A DNA stretch of 63,976 nucleotides, filler included, from Hyphochytrium catenoides (lineage: Eukaryota; Protista; Hyphochytriomycota): NCBI GenBank assembly GCA_900088475.1. It is 9 parts of 9 records of this genome, joined end to end, with 100 filler letters (N's around TTAATTAATTAA, not from the genome) between each part and the next. Parts side by side here need not be neighbours in the genome. Positions count along the whole stretch, not along the records: positions 50,811 to 60,869 come from FLMG01002537.1; 8 more parts are not named here. One strand, 5' to 3'. Shown in pieces: positions 52,489 through 60,869 of the stretch (its first letter is position 1; each line of letters begins with the position of its first letter). Under the pieces are notes generated by a model. It was not told where the DNA came from and ran no database searches. It saw nothing but the letters and a program-made list of their open reading frames with translations. A program made the position numbers and the translations under genes.

Positions 52489-54604
52489 GAGAGTGAGTTA
52501 GACCGACAATTAGGTGAGTTAATTCGACCCTCACCACTGATGATCCAGAGAAGCTAGGTAGGTATGAGGGGGAGTGCTGAGTGCTACAATGTTCGTTGTC
52601 AGTAGTACAGTAGTCACTCTCTATACACACCTAGCTCTCAGGGACATAGACGTTACGGGTACACCTGTGTTATGGAAAGGAGGGATGTGAGAAGAATTTC
52701 CAGAAGAACACAGGACCAGCAGAGGAGAGAGAGAGATGATGAGGGAAGCTGGGCCGAGCAAAGATCTCGAGACCAGACTCTCAGGACTTAGCAATCATTC
52801 AGAGAAATCTCAATCAGATATCAATACCCAGTCCCTTTGTTATCGTTTCATCTAGATTGTGCTCATACAGAACCTTCAGGCATTGCCACCCAGCTCTGTA
52901 AAGTCCATCACAATCATCCTCAAGAAGCTGGTTTGATGGAACGGATCCATTCGGACGTCAAAGGCCCCTTAGAAGTCCCATCTTTAAGCGGAAAGCGGTA
53001 CTATGTGACGTTCATCGAGGAGAGTACGAACTACACGTGCACGAACTTCGTCCGGGAGAAGAGCGAGGTCTTTGGAGAGTTTAAGGGGTTCAAAGCATTC
53101 ATGGAGAATAAAAACTGGGAAGAAGATCAAGACCCTAGTGAGCGACAACGGGGGAGAATATACTTCAAATTGCTTTAAGAAGGACTTTCTGAAGAAGCAT
53201 GGGATTGAGCATCAGAGTACTGCCCCCCACAACCCGCAACAAAATGGGAAAGCAGAACGTAAAAACCGCTCCCTGATGGACATGACTAGGTGGTGCATGC
53301 TGCATCACGCTAGACTACCGAAAGTCTTCTGGGCTGAAGCCATTCAAGCTGCCACTTATCTTCAGAACCGATGCCCATCATCTTTTCTAAAAGGCAACAC
53401 TCCTTTTGAAGCTCTCATGGGGAAAAAGCCATCCCTTCAGTATTTGAGAGTCTTCGGCTGTGTGGCATACGATTACATTCCCAGCACTCAACGAAAATCG
53501 CTGGACGCAAGGAGCAAGCCCTATATCTTCTTGGGCTATCCGGAGCATCAGCGTGGGTACAGACTTATGGACTCGATCAGCAAGAAGATTGTCATCCTCA
53601 AGGATGTAATTTTCGATGTACAGAAGTTCCACATAGAGGGTAGGGAGCTAAACTACCCCACCGATGATACTTTCCTGTTCTTGGAGGATGAAGAACAGCA
53701 GCCTCTGGAGCCAGCAGTTGAGGTGCTAGGAGATCTCATCGAAGAGGAGAACGACCCAGCGGTGGAAGGAGAGAACTCAGACAAGGAGCCTTGGAGATCA
53801 AGGCCGAATGAAGAAGCCTGTCATCAAGGAGTTTACGGTGTCTTCCTACTTTGTGGGGGAGGAATTTGCGATGGCCGCAGCTGCGGCTGACGTGGATGAG
53901 CCTCTCACCTTCTCTAAGGTCATGGTCTCTCCTGAAGCAGCTGAGCGATGGAAGGAAAGCTATGGACGCTGAGTATCAATCTCTCATTGACAACGATACC
54001 TGGGAGCTTGTGCCTTTGCCATCAGGCAGGAAGGCAATTACCTCTAAGTGGCTGTTCAAGGTCAAGCAGAATTCGGCCGGTGAGATTGATCGCTTCAAGG
54101 CCAGACTGGTTGCCCGCGATTTTACGCAACAGGAAGGTATTGGCTATTAGGAGACCTTCTCTCCTGTGGTCAAGTTTGAGACGATCCGCGCCATCCTGGC
54201 AGTTGCTGCTGCTAAGGATTTAGAGCTACAGCAAATGGACTTCTCTACTGCTTTCCTCAACGGGGTGCTCGAGGAAGAGCTATTCCTAAGGGCTATGAGA
54301 GAGGAGGGAAGAATTTGGTTTGTCGCTTGAAGAAGTCCATAGTCGAGAGCAGCCTGGAACCAGGTGGTCAACGCTTTCTCTGAGGAGCATGGCTTCAGTC
54401 GCTCCAACGCGGACTCCTGCGTCTACGTCAAGGCGGAAAAGGATATGATCCTTATCATTGCCATCTACGTTGATGACTTGATCCTTGCCTCCAACGACTT
54501 GGAAGCTGTTGAACTGTGATCGACGCTGAAACCAAAAACTGTACAGCGGACGACGCAGAGGGGAAAATCCCTGGTATATAAACAAAAACGGGGATTAGTC
54601 AAGA

Positions 54605-54685
54605 GTACGTTTGGTGTATGGTGCATACTGGTTAGGGTGTCGGTATCAAAGACAGAGGTCCTGGGTTCAAATCTCGGAGCGTACA
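54605..54685 (+). ncRNA. tRNA-like Pol III gene in T1 5' LTR (loosely tRNA-Pro-like)
   Basis: Acceptor GTACGTT/AGCGTAC plus discriminator A, A-box-like TGGTGTATGG, T-arm CTGGG-TTCAAAT-CTCGG, TATATAAA at -30, TTTT at 54690-54693. The anticodon region is enlarged to 28 nt and poorly paired. Confidence 0.78.
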
Positions 54686-54755
54686 AAACTTTTCTCCGGT
54701 ATATCCAGACAACCCCCAATATTAACTTAAAGTGCTCACCATCAAATGATAAACA

Positions 54756-54771
54756 TGGTGTACGCTCCGAG
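54756..54771 (+). promoter_or_regulatory. Primer-binding site of T1
   Basis: TGGTGTACGCTCCGAG is the reverse complement of CTCGGAGCGTACA+CCA. Confidence 0.88.
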
Positions 54772-54980
54772 CGATTTAACTCGGGCAATATAGTGAGTTA
54801 TTCGGTTCTGACCACGGATGACCATCACAGTTCCATTTGAATCTAGAGCTTACAGAGTTCTCTAGATTCCAGGGGAGTGTTGAACTGTGATCGACGCTAA
54901 AACCGAAAAGTGTACAGCGGACGACGCAGAGGGGAAAATCCCTGGTATATAAACAAAAACGGAGATTAGTCAAGAGTACG

Positions 54981-55304
54981 TGTTGGAGTCTGAGGGCATA
55001 GCTATGTGGACTACAAGCTGGCAAGCTTAACTACCCAAGTTTCAGCTCTAAACTCCCAGTAGAAGCCGAGATATGAAGCAAACGAAATGTCCCTGTTTAT
55101 ATGTATGGCTTATGGTCAGTACCCCGGAATACCTTCAGGACTGACTGTTCTAGACAGGGATGTTCTCTATGACTGAATATCTTCGGGTTTATTAGGAATA
55201 ATTGGCATAGTCAGAATAGCTCTAGTTTATGGGACCCCAGTTGGGCTTATAAGTAGAGCACTCTCATCTAATGACATTGTCCAATCATCCCATATAATCC
55301 AACA
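54981..55304 (+). mobile_element. Family B LTR nested in the T1 array
   Basis: TGTTGGA...TCCAACA termini. It matches the LTRs of the gag-only elements. No TSD. Confidence 0.88.
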
Positions 55305-55424
55305 GGTTCTCTAGATTCCGGGGGAGTGTTGAACTGTGATCGACGCTGAAACCAAAAAGTGTACAGCGGACGACGCAGAGGGGAAAATCCCTGGTATATA
55401 AAGAAAAACGGAGATTAGTCAAGC

Positions 55425-55505
55425 GTACGTTTGGTGTATGGTGCATACTGGTTAGGGTGTCGGCATCAAAGACAGAGGTCCTGGGTTCAAATCCCGGAGC
55501 GTACA
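55425..55505 (+). ncRNA. tRNA-like Pol III gene in T1 3' LTR
   Basis: Same fold as 54605-54685, with T-arm CTGGG-TTCAAAT-CCCGG. Confidence 0.78.
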
Positions 55506-58500
55506 AAACTTTTCTCCGGTATATCCAGACATCCCCCAATATTGATTCAAAGTGTTCACCATCAAATGATATTAAATTAACAAAGCTCTCAACAACTTGA
55601 AGACTCTTCTGGCAGAAGAACTTTAAGATGAAGGACTTGGGAGAACTTAAATTCTTTCTTGGAATGGAGATCTCGAGGGATAGACAGGCAAAGAAGATCT
55701 ATCTCAGCCAACAGAGATACCTTAAGGACATCTTGAGGAGATTTGGTATGCAGGACTGCAAGGCAGTGGTGACTCCTTTGGAAGACGGGTTGAAGCTTTC
55801 TAAGGAGCTGCCACCTGGGACCGAGAAGGGAGAAGAAGAGCCAGTGGACGGCATCTACAGGCATTATCGGAAGCCTGATGTACGCTATGATCGCTACCAG
55901 GCCAGATATTGCTTATGCGGTTGGACTACTTAGCCGATTCATGGTGAATCCCGGAAAGCGGCACTTGGAGTGCGCAAAGGTTCTGCGCTATCAACGAGGA
56001 ACAATCTCTTTCTCTCTTGAGGTCTCTGGAGATCTGCTTCTTAAAGGCTTCTCGGATGCAGATTGGGCTGGTTGTCCGGATGAGAGAAAATCAACCAGCG
56101 GCTTTGTTTTCTACTTGGGGAACGGTGCGATCAGCTATAAGTCCTCAAGGCAAACAACAGTTGCCTTGTCCAGCACGGAGGCGGAGTATATAGCTTTGTG
56201 CACTGCGGCTAGAGAAGGCATTTGGCTTCGACGACTTCTCTCAGAGCTTAAGTTCCCAACGCAGTCTCCTACTGTTATCTATGAGGACAATCAAGGTGCA
56301 ATTGCTCTTAGCAAGAACCACTTGGTGCAATCTCGGACCAAGCACATTGAGACGAAGTACCACTTCGTTAGGGAATGCATCGAGAGAAAGGAGTTGTCTG
56401 TTTCCTTTATGCCCACGAATTTGATGGTAGCCGATGGACTTACGAAGGCTTTAGGCAAAACGAAGTTTGCAGAGTTTTGTCAGAGACTTCAACTGCTTTA
56501 GGGTTCTTTGACTTCTTAAAGCGAGGAAGGGTGTCGAGGATCAAACTTCTCTCTCACGTTCTTTCATCTGACTCTTTGCGATTGTTCTCTTACTTTGGTC
56601 TTATCTAGCATGTTAGAAAAGGTAGAGTTCTAGACTTAGAGGGAAAAGTATTGAGTTCCGCTTTTAGAGAGTCAAACCTTAGGCCCTTAGATACGTAGCA
56701 AGAGTAAGACTAGTAGCATGTTTCGGTAGAATTAGAAAGTAGAGTTGGACCAGCCAGAAGAAGTGTCACCAGGCACGCGCCTTTGACCTGGTCGTAAAGA
56801 GTAGCTTAGCTATAGTTTATCTTAGTAGTGAGAAGATTAGAGTCGTAACGTTACGACGCTGTAAGGTAGACTTTAGAGTGAGAGGTAGTATAGCTCATAG
56901 TTAAAGTTTGGGTAGAGCAGAAGAGCAATAGCTTCTAGAGTTAAGATGAGCCGAGCTCTTTGCCGACTTGTCAGTAGTGAATTCATTCCGCAATTTGCCA
57001 AGCACCAGAAAACTCAGCTAGCCAACCTGCTAAAGCGTCTTTAGCTGAATGGACCTTCATAACAGCTTTACCGCTGTATTAGCTCTTGGATCTGTCTGTG
57101 AGGTGATCGGCTTCACCGCTGTTCCTCGTAACTCCTCTGTTAGCGCGCAGGTTGGTACGTCGTGGCCGGACTGCTCTCAACAGTAACGTCTGTGTCCCTG
57201 AGAGCTAGGTGTGTATAGAGAGTGACCACTGTACTACTGACAACGAGCATTCTAGCACTCAACACTGCCCCTCATACCTAGCCTCTCTGGATCATCAGTG
57301 GTGAGGGTCGAATTAACTCACCAAATTGTCGGTCTCACTCACTCACCCCCCCGCAGACGAAGCTAGGTGGGTAGTGGCAAGAGTACTGGTACTAGGAGGG
57401 ATGATTCCAAGGTGAAGATGCATTGTCCGAAAGAGAGGAGCGGGTAAAGGCTTGGTGAGACAATCAGCGGCCATAGCTGCAGAGGAGAGGGTGTAACAGA
57501 TCGGCTTAATTCTCCCGTTGGCTGCTTCTATTGCAGGACACAGTACTTGACATCAAAGTCTTTGACTTTGGTCGTGAAGAGGAACAGGGAACAATCACAC
57601 TCTTGTTGTCCTGGCTATTACGAACGAGCAGCCGGTTGGAGAAGCCAAGCTCGCTCAGGAAAACTCTGAAGTGCTCTGCGACCTGGCTCGCGGACCAAAG
57701 AGACGCGTCCGTCTCCGGCGTTGTCGACGCTCGAAGAGATTGTTTCTTTGACTTCCAATCAAAAGCACCGCCGTTGAGGCCCAATAAATAGCCTGTGCGT
57801 GATAGACTTGCGGTCATCTGAGTCACTAGCCCAACCAGCATCAGCCTGCATCGAGAGTTGAATAGGAGCATCTCCTCCTAGACACAAGGAATAGTCTTGG
57901 GTGGCCTTCCGGTAGGAGAAGTTACGTTTGACAGCCTCCCAGTGGACGTGGCGGAAGGCAGTTACATGTTGGCTCACAGCTTGCACCGCATAAGCGATAT
58001 CGGACCACGTGCACACCACCATTGACATGGAGCAAGGAACCCACTGCTTGGCGATAAGGGGTTCGAGCCAACCGGTCAACTTCATCAACAGAAAGAGGAA
58101 TGGTCGACGCTTTGGGCAAGTACGTCTTAGGCATCGCGGGGATAGGGTTTGGGTAGGCATCAAGTAGGTTGAAGCGCTCCAAGATCTCTGCGATATACTT
58201 CGGTTGTCGAAGGTATATCTTCCTAGCAGCTCGATCCCGTTTTACTTGGATGCCCAAGTAGTACTCTAACTCCCCCAAATCGGTGGTAGAGAAACGAGCA
58301 GGCCTCATAGTCTTCAGACCTGCAATTTCCTCGGTGGTGGGAGCAAAGAGGAGTATGGTCATCAACGAAGACGCCGACGATGTCAAGGTCGGCAGGTCTC
58401 GAAGAGTGCTGCTTGGCGTATACTCCAAAGTCACAGACGGTGCGGTGAATCCCCTTGTTCCATCAGATAATGGTGGGGGGTGTCATTCCACATCTGGGAC

Positions 58501-58859
58501 TGGAGCGGAGACCATATATCGACTTCTTCGGCTTCCAGATGCTATCTTCTTGTCCAGGAGCTGCGAAACTGGGGGACTGCCGCTTGTACACCTGCTAGTC
58601 AAAGTTGCGGTTCAGGCAGGATGCCTTTTTATCGACGTAGTGTACTTCTAGATCGAGCGTGGCGGCGAGCGAGAGAAGGCAGCGCGCTCTGTCATGCCCT
58701 ATCACTGGACCAAAGACCTCGCTAAAGTCAATACCTTACTTCTTCTGTCGATTGCCAGGAGTGACCACACTTGCCTTGTACTACTGTACTTGTGCACTGC
58801 TAACGATCTCTCTTCCGCGATCGGAGCGTATCTCCTTCACGCGCTCACCCGTCTGGTTC

Positions 58860-59117
58860 TGTTAGATTTTATCATTGGATGGTGAGCACTTTGTATTAAT
58901 ATTGAAGGGCGTCTGGATATACCGGAGAAAAGTTTTGTACGCTCCGGGATTTGAACCCAGGACCTCTGCCTTTGATGTCGACACCCTAACCAGTATGCAC
59001 CATACACCAAACGTACTCTTGACTAATCTCCGTTTTTGGTTTATATACCAGGGATTTTCCCCTCTGCGTCGTCCGCTGTACACCTTTTTTGGTTTCAGCG
59101 TCGATCACAGTTCAACA
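58860..59117 (-). mobile_element. T1 solo LTR with 5-bp TSD GGTTC, inserted in the Copia integrase
   Basis: TG...CA termini. GGTTC lies at 58855-58859 and 59118-59122. Confidence 0.92.
58936..59016 (-). ncRNA. tRNA-like Pol III gene in T1 solo LTR
   Basis: Same 81-nt fold as the other T1 copies. Confidence 0.78.
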
Positions 59118-59523
59118 GGTTCTTCATGAGAAGAATGAGCTTCTTCAACTTAGCTTCTGCTTCTCCTTTGCTTTGAAGAAATTGCACAAAGCACCTCCGA
59201 GAGTGATCATCCACAACGAGCAGAAAATGTACATAGCCTTGATAGCTCCAAAGAATATTTTCGTCGAAAGGAGAAAGAAGAAGGAGAATCAACAGGACAT
59301 TTACGAGACAATCCTCATCTCTTCAAAAATTCTCCAAAGCCCCGCCTCCATCCTTTGACTCTATAGTGAGTCACCTGTACGTCCTAGGGACTCTCTCTCT
59401 GGCTGCAGATGAGGGAGGCATCGACCGTATTATGACTGATGAACAGAGAAGAGTGCCTAGCTCTTCACACTCCGGATACTCTACATTCTTCTTCTGAACG
59501 CTCTCTCTGCTCCAGGTCCAGGG

Positions 59524-60869
59524 TGTTGAATTATATGGGATGATTGGACAATGTCATTAGTTGAGAGTGCTCTACCTATAAGCCCAACTGGGGTCCCATA
59601 ATCTAGGGCTATTCTGACTATGCCAACTATTCCTAATAAACCCTAAGATATGGAGTTATAGAGATATCCCTGTCTAGAACAGTCAGTCCTGAAGGTATCC
59701 TGGGGTACTGACCATAAGCCATAGGTATAAACAGGGACATTTCGCTTGCTTCCTATCTCGGCTTCTACTAGGAGTTTAGAGCTGAAACTTGGGTAGTTAA
59801 GCTTGCCAGCTTGTAGTCCACATAGCTGTGCCCGCAGACTCCAACACCTCCCCGCAGCTCGAACTCCCTCTTGTGAAGGGTCGAAGCTAAACATTCAACA
59901 CCTCCCCGCATGCTGTAGACCCGCTAGAAAGAGATTACTGGTTCTTGGGTTTCCATTGCACACATTTCTCGATGTACGATGAACAGCGAGGTTGGCGAGA
60001 TGTTGTTTCCTTAGCCTTTTTGATAAACGCGTCGAGATCTCCAGAAATTTCCACATTGTCTGATTGCTTCAGTGCTAGATAGAAAGAATGGAGAGTATTG
60101 TTAGCAGCGTCAAGCTTTTCTTGATTCAGAGCCTGCGTATTGCTTAATTGTCCTTCATTTGGATCCTTGGGACCTTGATGTTGGTTGACTCCTCTCCGTG
60201 CTTCCTCTTTGGAAAGAGATAGTTTAGTTGGTTGTTGAGATGTTTCCTTAGTGATGAGCTGGTTTTGTTCTTCAGTTCTTCTCAGTAGTGCCTTGACTGC
60301 CTCACGATAAGAAGTCTTCTTCTTTGATGAAGATAAATCAATAATTTTCTTCGAAGCTTTTGACAGATTCCTTTTAGAGCGTGATTTCCAGAAAGACGGT
60401 CTGTGATGAGCGTTCTGCTCGAGTTCCCAGCATTTCTCCGAAGGATGGCTGCGACTTCCGCAAAATGGGCACTCCGGCCATTGATCGCGAACTTTGATGT
60501 TAGATGATGATGAAGCTGGATGAGCCTTGTTCTTGGTCTCGTGATGACGGTGATGATGAGGTTCCTTTATCCTTTGTTGATGTAGAGTGTATGCAGCAAA
60601 GCCTTCTTCTTCATCATAATGCTTGTTGGTAGTGCGCAGCGCACGTCTTCGGTGTTGTTCTCCGATGAGAATATCATCTATGGCACTTGCACATAGTTCC
60701 CCCGTTCCACGCACTTGGATGGCTTGAGCAATACCTTCATATGAGCGGTGGAAGGGCCATAAGTACTGCGGCTTTGTAGAGGTTGTCGTAGAAATCTTTC
60801 TTCTCCATTATTTCTCAAAGTAAATCAAGCTTTCTTCTCTGCTGGCACAGGAAGAGGCTAATGTCTTGT
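59524..60869 (-). mobile_element. Gag-only LTR element (family B): gag ORF 59935-60714+, double PPT, 3' LTR 59524-59846
   Basis: Close paralogue of 35796-36983. It has the CCHC knuckle and the ORF is open where the other copy has a stop. The 5' end is lost in the gap. Confidence 0.82.

Follow-up and report, generated by a model that had tools for sequence, protein, structure and literature searches.

The stretch of DNA under study, referred to here as the window, comprises 63,976 nucleotides from the Hyphochytrium catenoides genome assembly GCA_900088475.1, in which parts of nine records are joined end to end with filler between them. The part derived from record FLMG01002537.1 (positions 50,811 to 60,869; hereafter the 10-kb piece) carries a short, non-coding retrotransposon, T1, whose full-length long terminal repeats (LTRs) each contain a tRNA-like unit. 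The primer-binding site (PBS) of the element is complementary to the 3' end of this unit, as that end would read after addition of a CCA tail. The features of the T1 copy are as follows.

54503 to 54507, + strand: upstream copy of the target-site duplication, AAGC(T), whose last T doubles as base 1 of the LTR (from the empty-site joint in sequencing runs X1-X3).
54507 to 54755, + strand: 5' LTR, 249 nt, with termini TGTTG...AACA (sequence reading, LTR alignments).
54575 to 54582, + strand: TATA box TATATAAA, starting 30 nt 5' of the first base of the tRNA-like unit, invariant in five of five LTR copies.
54605 to 54685, + strand: tRNA-like unit, 81 nt, CTCGG variant (ARAGORN).
54690 to 54693, + strand: TTTT run starting 5 nt past the 3' end of the unit, resembling a terminator for RNA polymerase III (Pol III), kept in three of four LTR copies.
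54756 to 54771, + strand: PBS TGGTGTACGCTCCGAG, the complement of 54673-54685 plus CCA (sequence reading, pattern search).
54772 to 54870, + strand: rest of the short internal region, non-coding (open reading frame and Pfam scans).
54871 to 54877, + strand: polypurine tract (PPT) AGGGGAG, abutting the LTR start at 54878 (sequence reading).
54878 to 54981, + strand: truncated middle LTR, its first ~104 nt, broken 5 nt into the tRNA-like unit (LTR alignments).
54981 to 55304, + strand: LTR of a second family, X, 324 nt, with termini TGTTGG...CCAACA (read depth; loose ends at 54980 and 55308).
55306 to 55326, + strand: the final 21 nt of the T1 internal region, repeated, with PPT GGGGGAG abutting the LTR at 55327 (sequence reading).
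55327 to 55582, + strand: 3' LTR, 256 nt, with tRNA-like unit at 55425-55505 (CCCGG variant) and TTTT at 55510-55513 (sequence reading, ARAGORN, Rfam).
55583 to 55587, + strand: downstream copy of the target-site duplication, AAGCT (empty-site joint).

The two full LTRs (54507-54755 and 55327-55582) are ~95.5% identical, and the inserted unit measures 1076 bp from the first LTR through the third (54507-55582), all of it bounded by one target duplication. This length is due to inserted material carried by the copy. In its canonical form, T1 measures ~620 bp in total: an LTR (~250 nt) is followed by the PBS, an internal region of 121 nt and another LTR. This layout is displayed by a 409-nt contig from a soil metagenome, which has the same PBS. 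The canonical PPT reads GGGGGAG, nearly all read contigs having G in place of the A at 54871. In contigs from three runs of the source organism (X1-X3), representing paralogous copies, the surrounding Copia sequence is uninterrupted, position 54502 being joined to 55583 and AAGCT fitting on either side. The five letters shared at this empty-site joint show that the whole T1 unit is a genuine insertion accompanied by a 5-bp target duplication. Only antisense open reading frames (ORFs) of 82-107 amino acids cross the element, Pfam assigns no family to them, and the homologue search with the 107-amino-acid antisense ORF lying over the first LTR and the PBS was empty. With its short TG...CA LTRs, the placement of its PBS and PPT, its target duplication and empty site, and its non-coding nature, T1 is a terminal-repeat retrotransposon in miniature (TRIM). 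The first-pass annotation had described the copy as a simple TRIM with a clean target duplication. Its LTRs, its PPT, its lack of coding capacity and its status as a real insertion were upheld, but the copy turned out to be composite and the duplication, AAGC(T)/AAGCT, to be ambiguous by one T.

The composite structure lies between 54878 and 55326. Here the truncated T1 LTR is joined, via a microhomology of 1-2 nt, to a complete X LTR, and the copy then re-enters the T1 internal region 21 nt ahead of the 3' LTR. The GGTT that follows the X LTR at this position corresponds to the first 4 nt of X's own PBS. The chimera could have arisen by a template switch between co-packaged RNAs; alternatively, a tandem T1 dimer may have undergone a nested insertion and, later, a deletion.

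A cloverleaf was found by ARAGORN in all four unit-bearing T1 LTR copies of the 10-kb piece. Two of these (54605-54685 and 55425-55505) bear out the initial observation of an 81-nt tRNA-like gene in each ~250-bp LTR. In the unit, the acceptor stem is 7 bp long (GTACGTT/AGCGTAC), one pair being G-U, and the discriminator is A. A D arm is present, the anticodon stem of 5 bp closes an 8-nt loop (TTAGGGTG), the variable region is long, and the loop TTCAAAT caps a T stem of 5 bp. Box B (GGTTC) is present; box A (TGGTG..TGG) is near Kojima's TRGCY..YGG but not identical to it. The ARAGORN call was tRNA-?(Pro|Pro)(aggg); it needs the 8-nt loop, and both anticodon options read Pro. Scanning the whole piece with Rfam at E<=1 missed the unit, and a 106-nt query recovered it below threshold. 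On the twin unit of the 3' LTR, the Rfam tRNA model gave a full-length match of 24.5 bits (E 0.0018), with 22 nt in the anticodon region where the model has 11. With a score below the Rfam threshold and an irregular anticodon arm, the sequence does not qualify as a conventional nuclear tRNA gene; because of the sub-threshold score, we refer to it as a tRNA-like unit.

The four LTR copies differ at six sites of the unit, all of them outside the acceptor stem and the D arm. The sole change in the T stem retains a G-U pair and the one in the T loop retains a purine. The U5-like tail of the LTR appears about three times more variable than the unit (11 differences in 195 positions versus 4 in 243, a small sample of four copies), which is suggestive of lower variability in the tRNA-like part. 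The enzymes that process the 3' ends of tRNAs act on the acceptor stem and T arm, both of which are intact in the unit.

The sequence TGGTGTACGCTCCGAG follows directly after the terminal CA of the 5' LTR (54754-54755), and its reverse complement is CTCGGAGCGTACA plus CCA. CTCGGAGCGTACA constitutes the last 13 nt of the unit (54673-54685); the DNA continues with AAAC, and the CCA is not encoded. Complementarity starts at the discriminator and spans the 3' strand of the acceptor stem and the 3' strand of the T stem only. This 13-nt core is the longest complement between the LTR and the internal region. None of 2000 shuffles of the internal region reached 13 (the maximum was 12), and the chance of an in-register match of this length is ~4^-13. 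The earlier description of an exact 16-nt complement holds for the first LTR (PBS at 54756-54771, CCA absent from the DNA) but not for the family consensus. In the 3' LTR, as in the solo LTR and the rearranged copy described below, the sequence is CCCGGAGCGTACA (CCCGG), the CTCGG form being confined to the first LTR (three of four versus one of four). Thus, the consensus RNA of the family would pair with 15 of the 16 PBS positions.

The family is abundant in the reads of the source organism. Among the differences listed for a 1.5-kb stretch in ~1,900 contigs of the largest run, no variant in the PBS or the next 26 nt had a share of at least 10%. The LTR tail varies across the same contigs; the PBS is unchanged also in the soil-metagenome contig. 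We conclude that the complementarity between the PBS and the element's own LTR is real and statistically secure.

Could the match be a non-functional relic of rearrangement, for example of an inverted partial duplication of the LTR, in a family that is dead? The region is heavily rearranged, the main T1 copy is chimeric, and in one T1 fragment part of its own LTR end is present in inverted orientation. However, similarity is absent beyond the 13-nt core on either side, no significant additional complementarity being found in its flanks at the DNA or RNA level. An inverted-duplication origin was rejected on this ground, as was a longer helix between primer and template; the confinement of the in-register match to 13 nt indicates the footprint of a CCA-tailed primer on its PBS rather than the stub of an inverted duplication. 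Moreover, the match occupies the canonical position of a PBS, after CA and with TGG, the same PBS recurs across many T1 contigs and in the soil metagenome, and the T1 family has made clean 5-bp duplications. A relic is therefore very improbable.

A T1 derivative was seen in reads at one locus of the source organism (54586/54756, with 26 letters between). There, the first 14 nt of the unit run directly into the PBS, as a result of a deletion between two TGGTGTA heptamers. The PBS resembles the 5' strand of the acceptor stem because the two strands of that stem pair.

Comparison with known tRNAs pointed to the source of the unit. TTAGGGTG is identical to the anticodon loop and next base of human tRNA-Pro-AGG, as is the 5-nt variable loop, taken together with the bases before it (AGAGGTC), to its human counterpart, and the T arm differs from that of the human tRNA by one mismatch (human sequence from a published library design, bioRxiv 10.1101/342485). 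In the acceptor stem, by contrast, pairs 2-6 are all unlike those of human and Aplysia tRNA-Pro, with pairing retained, and so is the discriminator. The PBS shows the same division. Its T-stem part, TCCGAG, resembles PBSs of the tRNA-Pro type, and elements primed by tRNA-Pro, such as murine leukaemia virus and Gypsy-13_CGi, share this part with T1. In the acceptor part they differ from T1, where TGTACGC follows the LTR unit and not tRNA-Pro (GGGCTCG; tRNA-Pro-type PBS, TGGGGGCTCG). That is, the two acceptor strands and the PBS agree with one another, the PBS tracking the acceptor of the LTR, and all three disagree with the presumed parent tRNA. Judged by these comparisons, the LTR unit is a degenerate, non-decoding cloverleaf derived from tRNA-Pro, with a remodelled acceptor stem.

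These features led us to two related proposals. The first is that the T1 family encodes its own primer for reverse transcription, in the form of a tRNA-like RNA that would be transcribed, trimmed, CCA-tailed and used in trans; we put this forward tentatively, as a reading with close to an even chance of being correct. The second, which we hold with equal reserve as plausible but short of probable, is that a non-decoding derivative of tRNA-Pro made by Pol III has become the element's own primer, its acceptor stem and the PBS having diverged jointly from every host tRNA, so that priming would be independent of the host pool.

The foremost alternative is that T1 is primed by an ordinary host tRNA with the 3' end ...C(U/C)CGGAGCGUACA-CCA. 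In that case, the LTR unit would be a degenerate captured copy of the tRNA, or the head of a short interspersed element, and the match would reflect shared ancestry. Host-tRNA priming is the rule for LTR elements, and in Helenus elements, a group of TRIMs considered below, the LTR insert and the primer can be one tRNA species, as in wasps and bivalves, where Lys-like inserts accompany tRNA-Lys PBSs. In those Lys/Lys cases, however, complementarity of the LTR copy to the PBS has been lost, whereas T1 keeps 12-13 of 13 positions despite a wrecked anticodon arm. PBS positions 16-18 fit T1's own RNA poorly and could reflect another tRNA; yet a host tRNA in which such an acceptor stem and discriminator A are joined to a Pro(AGG)-like body would make a strange hybrid by comparison with human and Aplysia tRNA-Pro. 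Nor did the metagenome and viral collections yield a tRNA with this end. A tRNA gene matching the T1 PBS would be marked by the 3' end CYCGGAGCGTACA; 241 million metagenome records and IMG/VR (few eukaryotic sequences) contained no tRNA with the 3' end of the T1 unit. Metagenome contigs scanned for GTTCRANNCYCGGAGCGTACA gave five matches, GC-rich and resembling bacterial coding sequence, with no tRNA and no similarity to T1 among them. In IMG/VR the tRNA-end pattern had no match, and a 14-nt PBS sequence had more than 118 chance matches, none in an LTR context and none with the full 16-mer in context. We know of no tRNA of a model organism with the acceptor stem of the T1 unit, which serves as a lead only. 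On balance, we consider priming by a host tRNA a substantial possibility, albeit somewhat doubtful.

T1 resembles a described group. Helenus/TRIMp3 elements are TRIMs with a tRNA-derived segment in the LTR, and those of fungi and plants generate 5-bp duplications and are partnered by Copia elements (Kojima 2024, PMC10886601). Like them, T1 is short and non-coding and possesses a PBS, a PPT, boxes A and B, a paired acceptor stem, a T run and 5-bp duplications. It also shares with the fungal and plant families the TGTTG...AACA termini and the presence of Copia neighbours whose PBS corresponds to the anticodon stem-loop of initiator tRNA-Met. The PBS sets it apart. Helenus PBSs pair with host tRNAs over ~8-12 nt and are often shared with autonomous Gypsy elements (supplementary figure of PMC10886601), whereas the T1 PBS matches the unit of its own LTR, in register, over 15-16 nt. 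Complementarity between LTR and PBS was sought by Kojima in ~200 Helenus families; none was found, and a role in priming was dismissed (PMC10886601). The supposition that such a match was undescribed for Helenus is thereby corroborated. In Kojima's consensus file, T1 words of 9-15 nt from the LTR start, the PBS and the unit were absent, save for generic T-arm words common to other families. The full-text literature contained nothing relevant on self-priming combined with tRNA-like LTRs, and the unit 3' end or the PBS, searched as words, gave only unrelated matches. By its organization, T1 falls among the non-autonomous LTR retrotransposons of the Helenus/TRIMp3 type, with one feature that the only systematic study found to be absent.

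In Kojima's Data S1, the T stems of Helenus-9_PTrit-LTR and Helenus-9_PHor-LTR differ by a compensatory pair (ATGGG/CCCAT versus GTGGG/CCCAC), and both families keep the acceptor stem GTGTGTT/AACACAC. This hints that Helenus units may generally be under structural constraint, contrary to the view that they are promoters only.

Other systems share parts of the proposed arrangement. Cassandra is, like T1, a TRIM with sequence derived from a Pol III gene, and a promoter, in each LTR. Unlike in T1, this sequence is 5S, which lacks a CCA end and shows no complementarity to the PBS, the latter being of the host-tRNA type; Rfam scans gave no 5S match in the T1 LTR. Non-decoding tRNA-like folds whose acceptor/T-arm half is intact, among them mascRNA from MALAT1, are cut by RNase P and RNase Z and CCA-tailed in cells. 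The mascRNA family gave a weak second Rfam match on the T arm of T1 (12.8 against a threshold of 42.5); it differs from T1 in originating from a host long non-coding RNA and in having no role in reverse transcription. A precedent for an element-encoded primer is provided by Tf1/Tf2 of fission yeast, where the PBS complements the element's own LTR-derived RNA. In Tf1, the first 11 nt of the element's mRNA are folded back in cis and cut by RNase H, with no tRNA-like gene, CCA or Pol III transcript involved. In T1, by contrast, the complement lies 69-81 nt past the first base of the unit; with transcription starting at the unit or ahead of it, this would not be a 5' end.

The Tf1 precedent raises the question of whether T1, too, might rely on pairing in cis, with the 3' strand of the unit folding onto the PBS and being cut to serve as a primer without CCA, or else acting in packaging or in masking of the PBS; the TGG would then be the relic of an older PBS of the tRNA type. 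Fold-back self-priming is established for Tf1 and its relatives, and the minimum-energy fold of 54605-54800 does pair the T arm and the acceptor 3' strand with the PBS region. This fold, however, is no stabler than those of shuffled sequences (z -0.44), and extension of the helix past the core is no better than chance (p ~0.2). In addition, the match ends exactly at the discriminator beside TGG, which pairing in cis does not predict, and no activity is known that would cleave at an internal site 81 nt into the RNA. We therefore regard this explanation as improbable.

Priming by an RNA of the element's own would proceed as follows. RNA polymerase III would transcribe the unit from many LTR copies, and the transcript would be trimmed by RNase P and RNase Z because its acceptor/T-arm half is intact. 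The CCA-adding enzyme would then tail the trimmed RNA, giving a product of ~84 nt. With its final 15-16 nt annealed to T1 genomic RNA at the PBS, this product would prime the minus strand, with reverse transcriptase presumably supplied by an autonomous partner of the Copia type. During plus-strand synthesis, the 3' end of the primer would be copied back into the PBS, and by this copying the PBS and the LTR gene would stay matched without a host tRNA. Copying of the 3' 18 nt of the primer into the progeny PBS is an established step of retrotransposition, and it offers a route by which a new primer can fix its own complement.

Several observations weigh against this scheme. The Rfam tRNA score of the unit, 24.5, lies below the gathering score of 29; the anticodon arm is aberrant, and the unit is no stabler than shuffled sequences (z -0.95 to -1.7). 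Position 16 of the PBS pairs only with the variant of this 5' LTR, and positions 17-18 (CG) mismatch the T loop (AT), so that the PBS does not represent a recent 18-nt copy of the RNA in its current form. Within a long transcript, the PBS is predicted to pair in cis with the 3' strand of the unit. The tRNA-Pro used as reference comes from animals and not from the host itself. Finally, the prior for such a primer is low, as no such case was found among ~200 Helenus families (Kojima 2024, PMC10886601). The notion of a private primer, already advanced in the first-pass annotation, is thus retained in tentative form: the register of the PBS, the intact acceptor stem and T arm, the boxes, the TATA motif and the TTTT run all appear to fit it, but the anatomy on which it had been built needed correction.

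The 10-kb piece as a whole is a nest of retrotransposons, and T1 sits in a degenerate pol gene of the Ty1/copia type. The Copia frame 5' of T1 reads ...IIAIYVDDLILASNDLE, with two stops. On the 3' side, an ORF at 55628 corresponds to the C-terminal portion of Pfam RVT_2, and the integrase and SH3-like domains of the interrupted gene were recognized by Pfam further upstream. Homologues of the Copia protein reach just 57% identity at best and either lack a name or come from various animals; Streptophyta-rich Copia clusters were indicated by the atlas. An exact-protein look-up with two ORFs of the stretch returned no record. Sequences 50864-52656 and 57183-58453 form long inverted repeats, 81-96% complementary, which comprise a second Copia-like element and its flanks and make the piece roughly palindromic. 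Additional LTR copies within it are the following.

58860 to 59117, - strand: solo T1 LTR with tRNA-like unit at 58936-59016 (LTR alignments).
52305 to 52488, - strand: rearranged T1 LTR fragment with tRNA-like unit at 52312-52394 (ARAGORN, LTR alignments).
52246 to 51924 and 59845 to 59524, - strand: two other copies of the X LTR.

The solo LTR is flanked by a perfect 5-bp duplication, GAACC (59118-59122 and 58855-58859). Its end reads GATAAAATCTAACA, 6 nt of which are missing from the 5' LTR of the full copy; both forms of the junction between LTR and PBS occur in reads, and the 6-nt gap therefore represents a difference between T1 subfamilies. In the rearranged fragment (52265-52488, - strand), the unit is followed by an inverted copy of the last ~36 nt of the LTR and then by the X LTR at 52246-51924.

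Family X is about ten-fold deeper than T1 in the reads. The loose ends of reads show that X is elsewhere preceded by ...GAGCTGCGGGGAG and followed by GGTTATGGGCCCACGCG. The latter represents a PBS whose complement lies in the anticodon stem-loop of initiator tRNA-Met, of the kind used in Copia-type half-tRNA priming; initiator-Met priming of this type has been described for fungal Helenus elements and their partners (Kojima 2024, PMC10886601). The TGTTG...AACA termini and a GGGGAG PPT are common to T1 and X. The X LTR could be the one that the autonomous partner of T1 carries, and the two families probably share enzymes, yet differ in primer. Parts of the stretch, chiefly words from the X and T1 LTRs, were found in soil and rhizosphere metagenomes (runs X4-X20, ~15 studies), at 97-99% identity. 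In view of this occurrence, the source organism, or else one closely related to it, would appear to be a eukaryote that is common in soil or in association with roots.

To our knowledge, every known retroelement or retrovirus that is primed by a tRNA takes it from the host, and the only known self-primers are those of the Tf1 group. If T1 does encode its own primer, a dedicated, tRNA-shaped RNA would constitute a third solution to the problem of priming. It would also provide a function for Helenus-type tRNA-like genes, so far regarded as promoters or as non-functional. Should a host tRNA with the same 3' end exist instead, T1 would represent an unusually fresh capture of a primer tRNA into an LTR and would inform the origin of Helenus elements. 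With a primer of its own, the PBS would be freed from the host tRNA, and the element could escape both PBS-directed silencing by 3' tRNA fragments and competition for primer. T1 would then offer a natural system in which primer, PBS and acceptor stem are bound to co-evolve.

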